From: Cyanophora paradoxa CCMP329
Lineage: Eukaryota; Plantae; Glaucophyta
Length of the DNA: 64,000 bases
Direction of reading: 5' to 3'
Assembly: GCA_004431415.1 (NCBI GenBank)
Contig: QPMI01000469.1
Coordinates: forward strand, 186,001-250,000
A program made the position numbers and the translations under genes. Below, piece after piece: positions 16,635 to 22,280 of this stretch; positions within the stretch are counted from its first letter, which is position 1; each line of letters begins with the position of its first letter. A model generated the notes under the pieces. The model was not told where the DNA came from. It searched no databases and was given only the letters and a program-made list of their open reading frames with translations.

Positions 16635-18272
16635 TGTAGTCGTTGAAAAGACGGAGCGCTCACTGTGCCGAGCCTTCGTCAATCGGCCACTGCCAGGCTG
16701 CAAGCAAGGCTGCCGAGAATCTTTCCAACTGCCGCCGACCTCCTACACGGTCCTCTTTTCAACCGGATCGCAGCGCGAAGCTGTCTTTTCAATGGGATCT
16801 CTCCTCGACTTCGCGACGACCGGCTCTCGGATACCAGCCTGCATGCGCAGCTGCAGTGCAGCGGCTCCTGCAGCGCTGCTGCTGCAGCTGCAAGAGAGAG
16901 AGGGAGGGAGGGAGAGAGAGAGAGAAGCCAACGGACGCAAGCCTTCTTGAACTCCACGGAGGAGTTTGGGCTCGAGGCTCGAGGCCGCGGGAACTATACC
17001 CCCCAACCCCGAACGCCGCGGAACGCGTCGTCGCGACTACTGCTGAGCTCGCAATGAGCACGCAGCGCCGCGGCACCGGTCGCGCCTGCTGATGTGTCCA
17101 GGCGCCCGCTGCCCGGTCATCAACTAACGCGATCTTCGCAAGCTTCGAAACCGGTTCAGTCAAGCTAGCTATAGCGTGCCGCTCTATAAAATGGCTTCGG
17201 CTCAGCATCAGCATGCGGAGCTGCAGCAGGCCGAGCCCAACGCCCAGTCAGCGCTGCGAGACCTTCGTCTTCGTATGTCTGGGTGGAGCCCACAAAACTC
17301 CAGCAACGGTTCAGACACGAAGGCAACCACTGTTCCGGAGACGCTGTCCGAGAGCACGAGAGGAGCCCTCGTTCAGTCGGGCGCGCCGGCGAAAACTCCG
17401 GCAGCTCCTGAGGCGAGGCCATCGGCGCTTCGAGCGGCTACCAAGAACACTTCCAACGGAAGCAATCATGTTGGCGTCCCAACGATAGCCGTGCTCAGGC
17501 CCAGCTTCACCAGCGGGGGCGGGCAGCCCGAGGACGAGCTGAGCATCAGCGTGCGGAACAACGCCGACACGCCGAAGAAGTCTCGGGAGCACCGCGCGAC
17601 ATCGCGCGAGCGAAGGCACAGCCACGGCTCATCGCATGGCTCCTCCAGAGGCGAAGGGAGCTCCTCGCGGACCAGGGCGCAAGTGCGCCGCTTCGCGCAT
17701 GACTGGGGCGCGGGCCTCACGCGCGCGCAGCTGCTGGTGCGGTTGCTGGCGGCGCGGGACATCGAGCTGCCGGGGGCGCCGAGCAAACTCTTCCCATGTG
17801 CGCGAGCGCTCCGGGGGCGGGGCGGGGCGGGGGCCGAGCGGGCGGCGCAGACGTGAAGCTCGAGGTGGCGGGGAAGATGTTCGTGTCGGCGCCCTCCTCC
17901 TTCGACCGGCAGCAGGCGTGCTGGGTGTGGGAGGACACGCAAGGCGCGCCGCCCGCGCGCCAGCGGGGCGGGCGGGGCTGACGGCGTCGCGCAGTCTTCT
18001 CCTTCGAGTTCCGGCTGAAGCGGCTGGAGCCGATGGTGCGGATCCAGCTCTTCGACATCAACACGGGCGCCCTCGTCGGCGCCGTCGCCGTCGACTTCGA
18101 GATCTTCGTCCAGAACGGCGTCCACAGGGTGCCGCCCCCGCCCCGCCCGGCCCCGCCCGCCCCGCCGCCCCTCACCGCCCCGCAGAGCGCGAACCTCTGG
18201 GTGGGGCTCGACCGCGAGGGCCGGGGGCGCGGGCAGGGCGGCAAGCTGCACCTCCAGCTCGTGTACTGCCCC
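15615..18272. repeat. Large inverted repeat: 15615-16169 versus 17719-18272
   Basis: About 555 bp of near-identical reverse-complement sequence, including three introns. Confidence 0.9.
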
Positions 18273-18902
18273 CTGGGAGGGAAAGCGCAGGCGGTCGCGA
18301 AGCTTCCCGTCTCGTCGGAGGCGCTGGCGGCGCTGTCGGCGGCGCCGCCCGAGAGTGCGCGGGAGGAGGGGCGGGGCGAGGGGGGGGCCGGCGTCTGGGC
18401 GACCGCGTCGTTCTCGGGCGCCGGGGCGCACGTCGTGCGGGACGCCCGCACGCCGCTCGCCGCCGCACGCTGTGAGCCACGACCCGCGCCGCCTCTCGCG
18501 CCGCCCTGACCCCGCGCGGCAGACGCGGCGGCGCTGGAGCCGGGGCAGGCGGCGTCGGGGGCGTCGGGGGCGTGGCCGGCAGTGGCGCGCCGGAGCGAGG
18601 CTTCGGTGATCTCGCCGGCGCGGCTGCCGGCCCCGCTCCCGTCGCCGCGGGGGGAGTCGCTCGGCGATCGCCTCGGGCGCTTCCTGACGAACCTCTTCGC
18701 GTGCGGCGGCTGCCTCGTGGCGGAGCGTGGGGAGCGGGGGGAGCGGGGGGAGCGGGGCGGGGAGATGCCGCGGCAGGGGCCGCGGCGCGTGGACTCGCGG
18801 ACGGTGGCCGTGCGGCGCAGCTCGCTCCGCTCCGGCGACCGCTCCGACGTCCTCTCCCTCGGCTCCGCCGCCCCCTCCCACACCCGCTCCCTCCGCATCT
18901 GA
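17191..18902 (+). CDS. C2-domain protein, paralogue B (head-to-head with A)
   Basis: Same C2 exons and introns as paralogue A. Shares RNNADTPKKSR and the C-terminal PRRVDSR..RSLRI*. Confidence 0.75.
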
Positions 18903-19407
18903 CCCCGCCACCGCCCCGCCTCCCCCGCCCGCAGCAGCGCGACCGCCCCCGCCCCATCCCCCGAGCTGCACGGACCGCCCACGCCCCGCGATCAGATAGT
19001 TCGCCCGCGCCCGCGCCCGCTTCCCTGCTTCGCATTACGTACCCTACCTGCATCGCCGCAGCAGCAGTCCTGTCGATACGTACCGTGTCAACGGTTTCTT
19101 TAAATTTATATGTAGTGTAATGAGCCTTTCCAAGAGTATTATGCTCACGTAGCCTTATTCAGTGTATTTTTTTGCAGACATAGCCTTAATCAGTGTATTG
19201 TTGCTCAAAGAGTACGTTCCAACTAGTAAATCAAGCTTGCGAACTGCAATTTCAGCCTGTTTTCAATATCTAGCTTCAAAAATTATATCGACTGCGAAAT
19301 GTATCTACATTGTCCGCTCAGCGTCCCTCCCCCGCGCACGCGCGCGGCCGGCGGCAGGCAAGGAGGAGCTACGTGGAAAGAAAGAGTGCGGGGGGGCGGG
19401 GCGGGGG

Positions 19408-22112
19408 CTAGAGCTGGATGCCGAGGAGGCAGGCGTGGCCCTCGTCGTCGTCGGCGGCGCCGCCTTCGGGGGCCCCCTCCTCGTCCAGCGAGCGCAGCAG
19501 CTGGTTCATCATCTTCTCGGCTGCCCGCACCCCCGCCATCAGCTGGTCCCGGTCGCTCCCCGCCGTGATGCGGCGCTTGCCGCCGGCCAGCTGCCAGGTG
19601 ACCTGGACCTCGACGACGGCGTCCGCGCCCTCGGCGTCCACCTCGAGGACGCGCACCTCGTAGGCCACCGGCTTCGGGAAGGCCACCCCCAGGCACCCCG
19701 CGAAGCTCCCCAGCGCGTTGATGTACGCCGCGAAGCCCCCGACGCCGCCGGCCTCCACCCGGTAGCGCTTCCCCCGGTACCCCACCTCGATGGACGCCAC
19801 GCTCTCCCCCGCCAGCACCGACGTCACCGACACGTTGTGCATCTGCCGCCCCGCTCAGCGCCCCGGCGGCGCGGCGGGGCGGGGGACGGCGCTGGGGCGG
19901 ACCACGACGAAGTCCTTGCTGCCGAGCCCGAAGAGCTCGTGGATGCTGCGCCCCGCTCAGCCCCGCGACGCGCGGCGCGTGCGAGGCGCGAGGCGGACAT
20001 CTGGGGGAGGTCGCCGGCGGTGACGGTGTGCTTCTGGCCGCCGAGCTCCTTGATGCGCTCGAGGAGGCGCTTCTCCTGGTCGGCGTCCAGCGAGATCCCC
20101 AGCTCCGCCAGGTTCAGCGAGAGCGAGGCCTGCCGCCCCGCCCCGCTGAGCCGCCCCGCCGCCCCGCCCCCGCCCCGCGGCGCACCTTGCCGGCGAGCTT
20201 GCCGAGGGCGAAGACGCGGTCGCGCCCGAAGCGCTCCGGGGCCAGGTCCGAGGAGTAGAGGCCGCCCTTCTTGTCGCCGTCGGCGTGGATGCCGGCGGTG
20301 TGCGTGTACACGTCCTTGCCGACGATCGGCGCGTTGTGCGGGATGCGGCGTCCCGAGAAGGCCTCCACCAGCTGGCAAGCGTGCACCAGCTCCTTGTCGT
20401 CCACCCCCGTGTGCATCCCTGCACCCCCGCCCCGCCCCGCCTCAGCCGGCCCCGCGGCAGCCGGCGGGGGGCGGGGCGGGGGGGCGGGGCCGGGGGCGGG
20501 CCGAGCTTGTCCTGGAGGCAGGTGACGAGGGTCTCGAGGCAGGTGTTGCCGGTGCGCTCGCCGAGCCCGTTCAGCGTCGCGTGCACGCCCCGCGCCCCCG
20601 CCTTCACCGCCTGCAGCGCGTTCGCCACCGCCCTGCCCCCCAGCCCGCCCCCGCGTGAGCCCGGCGGGAGAGTCGCTGGCGGGGGCGGGGCCGGGGGGGC
20701 GCACAGGCCGTAGTCGTTGTGGCCGTGGAACTCGAGGAAGAGGAGCGGGTGCCTCGCCATGATGTCCGCCACGCCGGCCCGCACCTCCTCCGGCTCCATG
20801 ATCCCCAGCGTGTCCTGCCCCGTCCACCCCCAGCTCAGCGGCCAGCCCCGGGGCCGGGCGCCGGGGGACGCGCGGCGTACGGGGAGGATGACGCGGCGGA
20901 TGGGGAGCTTGACGAGCTCGTCGACCATCTCCCGCACGTAGTCGTTCTCGTGCAGGAAGCCGTAGGACCAGTCCTCCAGATACACCTGGCCCCGCCCTCA
21001 GCGGCAGCGGCGGCGGCGGCGGAGGTGGGCGGGTCCGGCGAGCGGGGCGCGCGCACGTTGACGTCCATACCGCGCTTCTCGACGGCGTGCTCGACGGTGC
21101 GCGCAATGTCGTCCAAGTGCTCCCGCGGCGTCTTCCGCAGTTGCCGCTCGCAGTGCCGCCGCGAGCCCTTCGTCAGCAGGTTGATCGTCCGCCCCCCGGC
21201 CTCGTAGATCCAGTCGGGCGAGGCCGTGTGGTCACAGAAGCCCAGCATCTCCACCCGGCGCTGGAAGCCGGCCTTCTCCGCCCACTGCAGCACGCTCGTC
21301 ACCGCACGCTGCTCCTGCGGCGAGACACGCGCGCTTGCGATCTCGACCCGGTCCACGCCCAGCCGCTCCAGCAGGAATTTCGCGAGGAAGAGTTTCTCAG
21401 ATCCGGAGAAGGACACCGCGTGCGTCTGCTCGCCATCCCTTAGAGTAGTGTCCTGCAGCCGCGATTAGATACGCCAAAGTTGATGCCGCAACCGGATGCA
21501 TGTTCGCGCCGCACCATGATCTCTATGTGCCGCGGAGGCCTGTTGGTCTTCTCGGCTTGCAGCTTCGACGCCGCGCTGACGTCCTCCACGGCAAACGACG
21601 CGTCATCCTGAGCTTGGACGGCCTCTGCGGAGGTGGGCGTGAGCTCCGGGGTGACCTCGAGCGTGTCCCTAGGATTATCTGGCCGCGATTCGAGGTGTGT
21701 GTGGAGCGAATCGGCAGCGGGCAAACATCGACGGCGCATATCTAGCACTCTCTCTCCGGAGCTAGAGCAATCACACACAAGCAGCTCGGGCAGGTCGCCG
21801 GCACGCGATCAACCGGCCAATCTAACACTTAAAGAGGCAGGCTCGGCAGCAGACGGAGGGCGTCGGAGGCTAACCTTGCGTGGAATAGGGCCGCGAGACG
21901 CTGATGTCCTCCGCCTTCAGCGAGAACTGTGCGTCGCCCCCGGAGCGGACGTGAAACTGCCGCCGTGGAACTGAGCCGCGTACGCCATGGCTGGATGACC
22001 AGGAGACGTCCCGCTTGCAGCTGATGGAAGAGCCAAGTGCTGCGCCGCGCTGTGCGGACCCACGCGATGACGAACTCTGAAGTCCGACGGGCGGCGAGGC
22101 CACGAACGCCAT
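19408..22112 (-). CDS. cimA: (R)-citramalate synthase, Leptospira/Bacteroidetes type (DRE-TIM + LeuA-type regulatory domain), with plastid transit peptide
   Basis: DTTLRDGEQ..SFSGSEKLFLAKFLLERLGVDRVEIASARVS..EMLGF..NLLTKGS..VYLEDWS..DTLG..EFHGHNDYGL..NGLGERTGN..TAGIHADGDKKG..PERFGR..ALGKLAGKAS..AAEKMMNQ matches my recollection of L. interrogans CimA along its whole length. The N-terminus MAFVASPPVGLQSSSSR.. is Ser/Arg-rich. Confidence 0.88.
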
Positions 22113-22280
22113 GACTGGATGATGCGTGCGCGCCACGAACGAGGCCACTGAACGAACACGGCGGCTGCGGTACGGGCGGACGGAGGTGCTGGTGGGGGGG
22201 ATGAAGTGAAAGGGCTACAGCACTTCCTTAAAAAAAAGAAGCTGCGAGCAAACGCTTCTCGCCAAGCGCTGCGGACCAGG

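Follow-up and report, generated by a model that had tools for sequence, protein, structure and literature searches.

A Leptospira-type citramalate synthase homologue with a transit-peptide-like leader, encoded by an expressed nuclear gene of the glaucophyte Cyanophora paradoxa

In the textbook scheme for plants and algae, isoleucine is made from threonine via a plastid threonine deaminase. A gene of the glaucophyte Cyanophora paradoxa CCMP329 raises the question whether a primary plastid may also obtain the isoleucine precursor from pyruvate, by means of an enzyme of bacterial type. The gene lies in a stretch of 64,000 nucleotides (contig QPMI01000469.1, positions 186,001 to 250,000), here called the window, in whose own numbering all coordinates are given. 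The original prediction, made from the sequence of the window, held that it encodes a Leptospira-type citramalate synthase (CimA) with a plastid transit peptide. Our reading is that this is an expressed nuclear gene of bacterial origin, encoding a homologue of Leptospira-type CimA preceded by a transit-peptide-like leader, and that it serves a plastid route to isoleucine; to this reading as a whole we assign a probability of roughly 0.68.

The coding region occupies 19408..22112 on the minus strand, as do all features described below, and the bounds originally proposed coincide exactly with the start codon (ATG, 22112) and the stop codon (19410-19408). It consists of ten exons and nine introns, and splicing of the window coordinates yields a coding sequence of 1932 nt with a single open frame for a protein of 643 residues. 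The 5' UTR (22113..22205) measures at least 85–93 nt, as transcript contigs extend to 22197 (run X1) and 22205 (run X5), and a reading of its sequence revealed no upstream ATG. The 3' UTR (19173..19407, about 235 nt) runs into an AT-rich stretch, the X1 contig continuing for 177 nt past 19350. In the transcript contigs, which are 2252 and 2254 nt long in runs X1 and X5, with further pieces in X8 (three studies in all), eight of the nine introns are spliced out at the modelled positions, and the ninth joint, that of intron 3, agrees with the spacing of the transcript record. Contigs of the DNA run X15 retain several introns, which are read through unbroken. An alternative acceptor for intron 1 at 21678, which would give a protein of 661 residues, was ruled out since the transcripts show the acceptor at 21624. 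One of the nine introns, intron 6 (20501-20419), is of the GC-AG type. The GC content at third codon positions is 0.93 and that of the introns 0.78, in a window with an overall GC content of 0.705 in which the gene is present as a single copy. The citramalate-synthase-like gene is thus confirmed as an expressed, intron-bearing nuclear gene of the alga, the splice joints in the transcript contigs bearing out the prediction of an intron-containing nuclear gene.

Like LiCMS, the Leptospira enzyme known from catalytic (3BLE, 3BLF, 3BLI) and regulatory (3F6G, 3F6H) structures, the algal protein combines an HMGL-like TIM barrel with an HCS_D2 subdomain and a LeuA_dimer domain. The NCBIfam model for (R)-citramalate synthase CimA of Leptospira, NF042433, was the top model for all seven searchable exons, and the match is collinear over positions 12–513 of its 514. 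Exon 2 (21515..21624) encodes an acidic linker and the start of the mature enzyme (up to RHIEIM). The first half of the catalytic TIM barrel is encoded by exon 3 (21057..21452; model positions 12–142, 160 bits), which contains the motifs DTTLRDGEQ, VDRVEIASARVS, EMLGF and NLLTKGS as well as the equivalents of Arg16, Asp17, Leu81 and Leu104. Exon 4 (20881..20985; positions 143–177) carries VYLEDWS, with the equivalents of Tyr144, Glu146 and Trp148, and exon 5 (20705..20814; positions 178–212) carries DTLG and HGHND, with Thr179 and the metal ligands His207 and His209. The barrel ends in exon 6 (20502..20632) with GLGERTGN. The post-barrel subdomain HCS_D2 (PF22617) with HADGDKKG and ALGKLAGK is located in exon 7 (20186..20418; positions 260–335, 108 bits), followed by a linker subdomain in exon 8 (19999..20129; positions 336–377). 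Exon 9 (19903..19945), with 14 whole codons and a split codon, is too short for a search of its own, and both its end joints are found in transcripts. Exon 10 (19408..19842; positions 398–513) encodes the LeuA_dimer regulatory domain (PF08502, 45 bits) with a remodelled effector pocket, and closes with an acidic tail, some 25 residues long (EEGAPEGGAADDDEG...). All motifs listed in the original prediction could be located, i.e. VDRVEIASARVS, NLLTKGS, VYLEDWS, HADGDKKG and ALGKLAGKAS, the last of which crosses the joint of exons 7 and 8 after ALGKLAGK.

Summed over exons scanned separately, and hence not to be read as a whole-protein score, NF042433 reached about 488 bits, compared to about 170 bits for the highest-scoring LeuA model; TIGR00977, the model for citramalate synthases of the Geobacter/cyanobacterial type, matched three exons with a total of about 91 bits. 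These three exons scored 24.8, 41.3 and 25.1 bits on TIGR00977 versus 160, 55.6 and 107.8 bits on NF042433. Neither the LeuA models (TIGR00973, NF00208x) nor TIGR00977, with its cut-off of 450 bits, were best-scoring for any exon or reached their cut-offs. For exon 3 alone the E-values were 7.5e-47 against NF042433 and 6e-39 against LiCMS, a resemblance far beyond chance. The equivalog cut-off of NF042433 is 950 bits, well above the algal exon sum, so that automatic naming as CimA by NCBI's rule would fail. However, eight of eight bacterial members of the clade from outside Leptospira scored 500–641 bits, equally below 950, which suggests that the cut-off is tuned to close relatives of Leptospira. 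A true LeuA scored 183 bits on NF042433, compared to 889 on the model for its own family. To our knowledge, the Leptospira enzyme is the only one characterised in the NF042433-like clade. The nearest solved structures are likewise those of LiCMS: exon 3 matched 3BLE with 136 bits and exon 7 did so with 76, while exon 10 matched 3F6G with 59 bits; against IPMS structures exon 3 scored about 32 bits; a search of the ESM Atlas returned generic HMGL-like clusters only. Profile scores, structure matches and the trees described below agree in assigning the protein to Leptospira-type CimA rather than to LeuA, as had been proposed.

By hand count from the alignments, identity to LiCMS is about 53% in exon 3, about 58% in exon 7 and about 39% in the regulatory domain. 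Both proteins have the same catalytic and metal-binding residues (Arg16, Asp17, Glu146, Thr179, His207 and His209) and the same pocket formed by Leu81, Leu104 and Tyr144, which are reported to be the pyruvate-pocket residues of LiCMS (Ma et al., 2008). Column counts showed no variation at the equivalents of Leu81, Leu104, Tyr144 and Trp148 among 75 clade members and the alga, while 13 LeuA sequences have Ala or Cys, Phe, Ser and Gly at these positions. The prediction that the specificity residues are retained therefore holds for the two leucines and the tyrosine; the threonine of DTLG, also named in it, is indeed present, but as it is conserved in LeuA too, it does not discriminate between substrates. 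Over the catalytic domain, the alga is 52% identical to the bacterial clade, compared to 53% between bacterial phyla, i.e. the catalytic core is conserved to the same degree as between phyla. In contrast to LiCMS, the algal protein is encoded by a nuclear gene with nine introns and has a leader of about 105 residues and the acidic tail mentioned above.

The closest full-length relatives are CimA-like proteins of Sumerlaeota, Bacteroidota, Lentisphaerota, Gemmatimonadota and other groups (e.g. P0010, P0122, L001, L005), with 46–50% identity and in the same clade; in BLAST comparisons this range was found with Sumerlaeota, Bacteroidota and Lentisphaerota proteins, and 28–32% with LeuA of Burkholderiaceae. 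These bacterial proteins share the hallmark residues of the alga, and are without leader and introns. Many of their database entries carry the name '2-isopropylmalate synthase'. In trees of bacterial CimA-like and LeuA sequences, in a sampling that does not extend to Leptospira, cyanobacteria, archaea or plants, the algal protein fell inside the CimA-like clade and apart from LeuA (SH-aLRT 100; UFBoot/SH-aLRT 100/100 in a second tree), and the grouping with LeuA that would have contradicted the original prediction was not seen. The algal sequence is nested in none of the sampled phyla, and its branch is long (1.4–1.6) with a position that shifts from tree to tree. An exhaustive comparison of exon 3 with 1.84 billion representative sequences gave no match above 63% identity, and a word search with exon 3 over lengths of 73–231 residues none above 64%. 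Those exon 3 matches that bear a source name, a minority, are all bacterial. The matches among the representatives that had long N-termini turned out to be a fusion of LeuD and CimA from bacteria, along with chimeric calls, rather than eukaryotic proteins. A full-length Sumerlaeota query matched only its own close bacterial relatives, and an exact look-up of the exon-10 open reading frame returned no record. The gene would derive from a bacterium carrying a Leptospira-type CimA, and its residence in the nucleus would have been long enough for nine introns and the codon bias of the host to be acquired.

The leader is encoded largely by exon 1 (21875..22112), for which no Pfam match was found. 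It has no counterpart in the bacterial proteins, to which BLAST alignments begin at residues 95–116, and it is rich in Ser, Gly and Arg. The protein starts with MAFVASPPVG, with a Phe at position 3, and the first 60 residues contain 15 Ser and 7 Arg, the earliest acidic residue being at position 35. A Phe among the first 10 residues, an abundance of hydroxylated and basic residues, few acidic ones and an N-terminal extension are the features of transit peptides of the glaucophyte/rhodophyte type. Published cyanelle transit peptides of Cyanophora start with MAFV or MAAFV and are up to about 100 residues long (PMC4510345). The predicted Phe-containing N-terminus is thus present in the spliced protein, and by its resemblance to the published examples the leader looks like a putative plastid transit peptide. 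The published cyanelle proteome, which covers only 262 proteins, does not include this protein; it does include IPMS, LeuD, KARI, DHAD and the AHAS small subunit (PMC4510345).

The regulatory domain has diverged much further than the catalytic one, with 30% identity between the alga and the bacterial clade, compared to 45% between bacterial phyla. Residues that are near-invariant in the bacteria are replaced in the alga (D431A, L451P, D453A, I458V), T464A is a further replacement, and the bacterial PPGG(K/R)TDA loop, PPGGKTDA in LiCMS, has become LEVDAEGADA. The different loop noted originally, VRVLEVDAEGADA, is therefore real and is accompanied by further changes. The equivalents of Tyr430, Leu451, Tyr454, Ile458 and Val468, which are reported to form the isoleucine-binding pocket (Zhang et al., 2009), are Phe, Pro, Tyr, Val and Val, so that relative to LiCMS the effector pocket carries Y430F along with D431A, L451P and I458V. 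The LeuA_dimer domain is nevertheless still recognisable over its full length from the PF08502 and 3F6G matches. Given the loss of several near-invariant residues of the allosteric domain, feedback by isoleucine is probably weakened or altered.

Two alternative explanations of the locus could be rejected. Bacterial contamination or an assembly artefact might be suspected from the fact that the closest relatives are all bacterial, but it is practically negligible in view of nine spliceosomal introns missing from the transcripts, third-position GC that fits a host window of 70% GC, a leader of eukaryotic type, and at most 63% identity over exon 3 to any bacterial sequence among the 1.84 billion representatives. 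A paralogue of LeuA acting on 2-oxoisovalerate in leucine synthesis would have the same domain architecture and would agree with the '2-isopropylmalate synthase' labels on many bacterial clade entries. We consider this very improbable, as LeuA models reach only about one third of the CimA model score, identity to true LeuA is just 28–32%, the tree splits the two groups at 100/100, the three pocket positions are those of CimA, and the cyanelle proteome of Cyanophora already has a separate IPMS of cyanobacterial type.

The two others concern the origin and the role of the enzyme. The gene may have come with the plastid, from a cyanobacterial ancestor possessing an NF042433-type CimA that has since been lost or replaced in the sampled cyanobacteria. 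Isoleucine synthesis via citramalate does occur in cyanobacteria (PMC3187577; PMC11450739), and the algal branch lies deep in the clade, in a tree without cyanobacterial sequences. The exons, however, score about 91 bits on TIGR00977 against about 488 on NF042433, and no cyanobacterium appeared among the named matches of searches that were biased by peptide pattern, query or length, which makes an endosymbiotic origin quite unlikely. These two results lend indirect support to the horizontal acquisition from a non-cyanobacterial source that was originally proposed. The citramalate synthases of the Geobacter/cyanobacterial type would catalyse the same proposed reaction in the same pathway as the algal enzyme, from a different branch of the family. 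Alternatively, the protein could be a working citramalate or 2-alkylmalate synthase whose main role is other than isoleucine supply. If insensitive to feedback, it could serve 2-oxoacid elongation, an outlet for excess pyruvate and acetyl-CoA, or accumulation of citramalate, like the citramalate synthase derived from IPMS in ripening apple. This is consistent with the near-invariant residues lost from the regulatory pocket, with the faster evolution of the regulatory domain compared to the catalytic one, and with the feedback-free plastid enzyme of apple, MdCMS, which contributes both to esters and to isoleucine (PMC7826400). A functionless domain should disappear in time, as happened in apple, whereas the LeuA_dimer domain persists in full, and we regard such a role as unlikely.

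Our main reading remains a plastid route to isoleucine. The mature protein would be a dimeric metallo-enzyme of the DRE-TIM type, converting acetyl-CoA and pyruvate to (R)-citramalate; this would be turned into 2-oxobutyrate via plastid LeuCD and LeuB, and 2-oxobutyrate would enter the shared branched-chain pathway to yield isoleucine without threonine deaminase. Taking an enzyme of CimA type together with a plastid-style leader, we propose that the alga can probably make the isoleucine precursor from pyruvate in its plastid, instead of or besides from threonine. A more far-reaching version, in which plastid isoleucine is made mainly or only via citramalate, a non-cyanobacterial CimA has replaced that of the endosymbiont (xenologous replacement), and the allosteric domain no longer responds to isoleucine, is rather doubtful; if true, a 'bacterial' threonine-independent route would have been kept by a primary plastid ever since it arose, with a new kind of regulation.

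A search of the literature found no paper joining 'citramalate synthase' with Cyanophora or glaucophytes, and none on CimA in algae. The only characterised citramalate synthase of a eukaryotic plastid that we know of is that of apple, a recent offshoot of plant IPMS. Like the proposed algal protein, MdCMS is a chloroplast-targeted eukaryotic enzyme that functions in isoleucine synthesis and 2-oxoacid elongation and bypasses the control by threonine deaminase, but its regulatory region is missing altogether (PMC7826400), whereas the algal protein has a bacterial CimA ancestry and has kept a diverged regulatory domain. A bacterial-type CimA in the alga would mean a second, independent acquisition of the pyruvate route by eukaryotes, in a lineage that serves for inferring ancestral features of plastids, and it bears on the share of non-cyanobacterial genes in plastid amino-acid metabolism. 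In the bacterial relatives, D431, L451, D453, I458 and the PPGG loop are all near-invariant, and the CimA-type allosteric module is already in use for isoleucine biosensors (PMC13381585); the regulatory domain of the alga represents a natural variant of this module.

The coordinates of the original prediction, 19408-22112, match exactly the start and stop codons of a gene on the minus strand, which was modelled by reading the three minus-strand frames and joining exons at GT-AG borders. Its ten exons (22112-21875, 21624-21515, 21452-21057, 20985-20881, 20814-20705, 20632-20502, 20418-20186, 20129-19999, 19945-19903 and 19842-19408) form a coding sequence of 1932 nt with a single open frame of 643 aa, present as a single copy inside the 64-kb window. 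Intron 1 is 250 nt long and introns 2-9 are 53-83 nt; eight introns have a GT donor and intron 6 (20501-20419) has GC. Public runs from the same organism were compared with positions 19350-22250. Eight of the nine introns are absent, at the exact model borders, from contigs of 2252 and 2254 nt (two studies) and from pieces of a third study, and for intron 3 the spacing of contig pieces is consistent with removal. Contigs of a 2012 DNA run are unbroken across several introns, and alongside these the intron-less contigs are transcript-like; the label of the runs as RNA is a guess by the database tool. In the transcript contigs the 5' UTR spans at least 85-93 nt and contains no upstream ATG; the 3' UTR is about 235 nt long. 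The predicted intron-containing nuclear gene is thus present and transcribed.

The GC-AG intron 6 has the donor GCCCGC, and its removal at these borders is seen in transcript contigs from three runs. Introns 3-9 (19843-21056, minus strand) have 78% GC, and their sense strand is rich in G, as in the run GGGGCGGGG. Their donors are mainly GTGCGC or GTCCGC, and each contains a CTGAG, CTCAG or CTCAC motif, 12-25 nt upstream of the 3' AG, that looks like a branch-point consensus. In the DNA run mentioned above (X15), summed contig depth at 20126-20222 and 20417-20513 is 142-251 for intron repeats versus 14-31 for exons, with many loose ends, suggesting that the G-rich intron sequence resembles a genome-wide repeat that breaks short-read assemblies there. 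The window has 70% GC except for about 220 nt of AT-rich sequence (19080-19300), in which the transcript 3' end lies and which separates the gene from the next GC-rich coding-like region (17466-19050).

Family membership was assessed by exon-by-exon searches, with scores summed over the seven searchable exons. The Leptospira CimA model NF042433 ('(R)-citramalate synthase CimA') is the top NCBIfam model for all seven, with collinear, non-overlapping matches (12-142, 143-177, 178-212, 215-256, 260-335, 336-377 and 398-513 of 514) that sum to about 488 bits, versus about 170 for the best LeuA-type model and about 91 for TIGR00977, which models the other type of bacterial citramalate synthase. Pfam identifies HMGL-like, HCS_D2 and LeuA_dimer domains, with no match in exons 1-2. 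The top solved structure for exon 3 is the catalytic domain of Leptospira interrogans citramalate synthase (LiCMS, 3BLE; 136 bits, versus about 32 for the best IPMS); exon 7 scores 76 bits with 3BLE and exon 10 scores 59 bits with the LiCMS regulatory domain (3F6G). The equivalog cut-off of NF042433 (950 bits) lies above the algal sum, but eight bacterial proteins of the CimA-like clade also score merely 500-641 bits, and a true LeuA (Caballeronia) scores 183 bits, against 889 on its own model. The algal protein is therefore at the low end of the score range of this clade and far from LeuA, and the cut-off seems tuned to close Leptospira relatives.

LiCMS numbering was derived from HMMER alignments (native residue = 3BLE index minus 12, or 3F6G index plus 389), the 3F6G offset being verified against the K463/T464 insertion site (PMC13381585). 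When 75 CimA-like proteins were aligned with 13 LeuA-like outgroup sequences, most of them Burkholderiaceae LeuA, four residues proved invariant in the CimA-like clade and the alga and different in LeuA: Leu81 (Ala/Cys in LeuA), Leu104 (Phe), Tyr144 (Ser) and Trp148 (Gly/Ala). The first three reportedly form the pocket for the methyl group of pyruvate (Ma et al. 2008). Both groups conserve Arg16, Asp17, Glu146, Thr179, His207 and His209. Of the pyruvate-specificity residues originally proposed, Leu, Leu and Tyr are retained, but the Thr of DTLG, also conserved in LeuA, is a general catalytic feature and not a specificity mark.

When one genome per prokaryotic species was scanned with a peptide pattern, 25 loci in Sumerlaeota, Bacteroidota and Lentisphaerota matched exon 3 at 52-62% identity and 15 more, mostly Burkholderiaceae LeuA, at 30-35%. 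Nothing above 63% identity was found by an exhaustive phmmer search with exon 3 over 1.84 billion cluster representatives, and nothing above 64% by a word-index search, whose named partial matches are from Gammaproteobacteria (including Methylococcales), Omnitrophota, Gemmatimonadota, SAR324, Thermodesulfobacteriota and Bacteroidota. Full-length identity of the algal protein is 46-50% with the best bacterial proteins, compared with 28-32% for LeuA. Two trees, of 81 rows and of 38 rows with bootstraps, sample neither Leptospira, cyanobacteria, archaea nor plants; in both, the longest branch divides CimA-like proteins from LeuA (support 100 and 100/100, respectively) with the algal protein on the CimA side, in agreement with the predicted Leptospira-type CimA rather than LeuA. 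The algal protein belongs to neither the Bacteroidota group nor the Sumerlaeota-containing group (both well supported, at 100/99); its branch is long (1.4-1.6) and shifts from tree to tree, so the trees single out no donor. No eukaryotic relative was recognised among the exon 3 search matches; those with a long N-terminus are chimeric gene calls and a bacterial LeuD-CimA fusion. This fusion (P0144, a metagenomic protein of 711 aa on a 78-kb contig) consists of a LeuD small subunit (Aconitase_C) fused with a CimA-like synthase and groups with a Parabacteroides sequence in the tree; it provides a link between this clade and the LeuCD reaction.

Bacterial contamination is ruled out by the nine introns and the host-like composition (GC3 of 0.93 for the gene and 0.96 in its mature part, intron GC of 0.78, window GC of 0.705), which also point to long residence in the nucleus. 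A cyanobacterial gene, inherited with the endosymbiont, is a less likely origin, since the algal protein matches TIGR00977 poorly (about 91 bits) and we take this to be the type of the cyanobacterial citramalate synthase. A citramalate route does operate in cyanobacteria (PMC3187577; PMC11450739). A bacterial source carrying the Leptospira-type CimA fits the data.

Bacterial homologues start 5-20 residues ahead of DTTLRDGEQ, and the algal protein is about 105 residues longer. This leader begins with MAFVASPPVG, bearing out the predicted Phe-containing N-terminus, has 15 Ser, 8 Gly and 7 Arg in residues 1-60, and lacks acidic residues before position 35. It resembles precursors from the Cyanophora paradoxa cyanelle TAILS study, which start with MAFVAPIVAV, MAAFVASIPA or MAFVGTPVAA and whose mature forms start as far in as about residue 100; that study describes Phe among the first residues as the hallmark of transit peptides in glaucophytes (PMC4510345). 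A plastid location is thus plausible. The 262 proteins of the published cyanelle proteome include cyanobacterial-type IPMS, LeuD, KARI, DHAD and the AHAS small subunit, and list neither the CimA-like protein nor threonine deaminase (PMC4510345).

We propose that the algal enzyme is most likely a plastid citramalate synthase feeding isoleucine synthesis. The mature enzyme would condense pyruvate and acetyl-CoA to (R)-citramalate, which LeuCD and LeuB would convert to 2-oxobutyrate for entry into the common branched-chain pathway. This route to isoleucine is established for Leptospira, methanogens, Geobacter and cyanobacteria. No paper connecting citramalate synthase with glaucophytes or other algae was found; among eukaryotes the closest precedent is MdCMS of apple, which is IPMS-derived and has no regulatory region (PMC7826400). 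The algal protein would represent a known kind of enzyme in an unexpected host and, putatively, compartment.

The remodelled regulatory domain is the most distinctive feature of the algal protein. Catalytic domain identity is 52% between the alga and the bacterial clade and 53% between bacterial phyla, versus 30% and 45%, respectively, for the regulatory domain. As predicted, the regulatory loop differs: PPGG(K/R)TDA of bacteria is replaced by LEVDAEGADA, two residues longer. Further near-invariant positions, counted over 61 bacterial clade members, have changed as well: D431A (Asp in 54 of 61), F433Y (Phe in 60), L451P (Leu in 60), D453A (50 Asp, 9 Asn), I458V (Ile in 60) and T464A (Thr in 51). 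The isoleucine pocket is reportedly lined by Tyr430, Leu451, Tyr454, Ile458 and Val468 (Zhang et al. 2009). Tyr454 and Val468 are unchanged in the alga, and position 430 is Phe, as in a quarter of the bacteria. Since the domain is recognised by Pfam and 3F6G, it probably still folds and dimerises; from the substitutions, isoleucine feedback is likely to be weakened or retuned. The regulatory domain is followed by some 25 C-terminal residues (EEGAPEGGAADDDEGHACLLGIQL; 19411-19485, minus strand) that are acidic, of low complexity and without counterpart in the aligned bacterial homologues.
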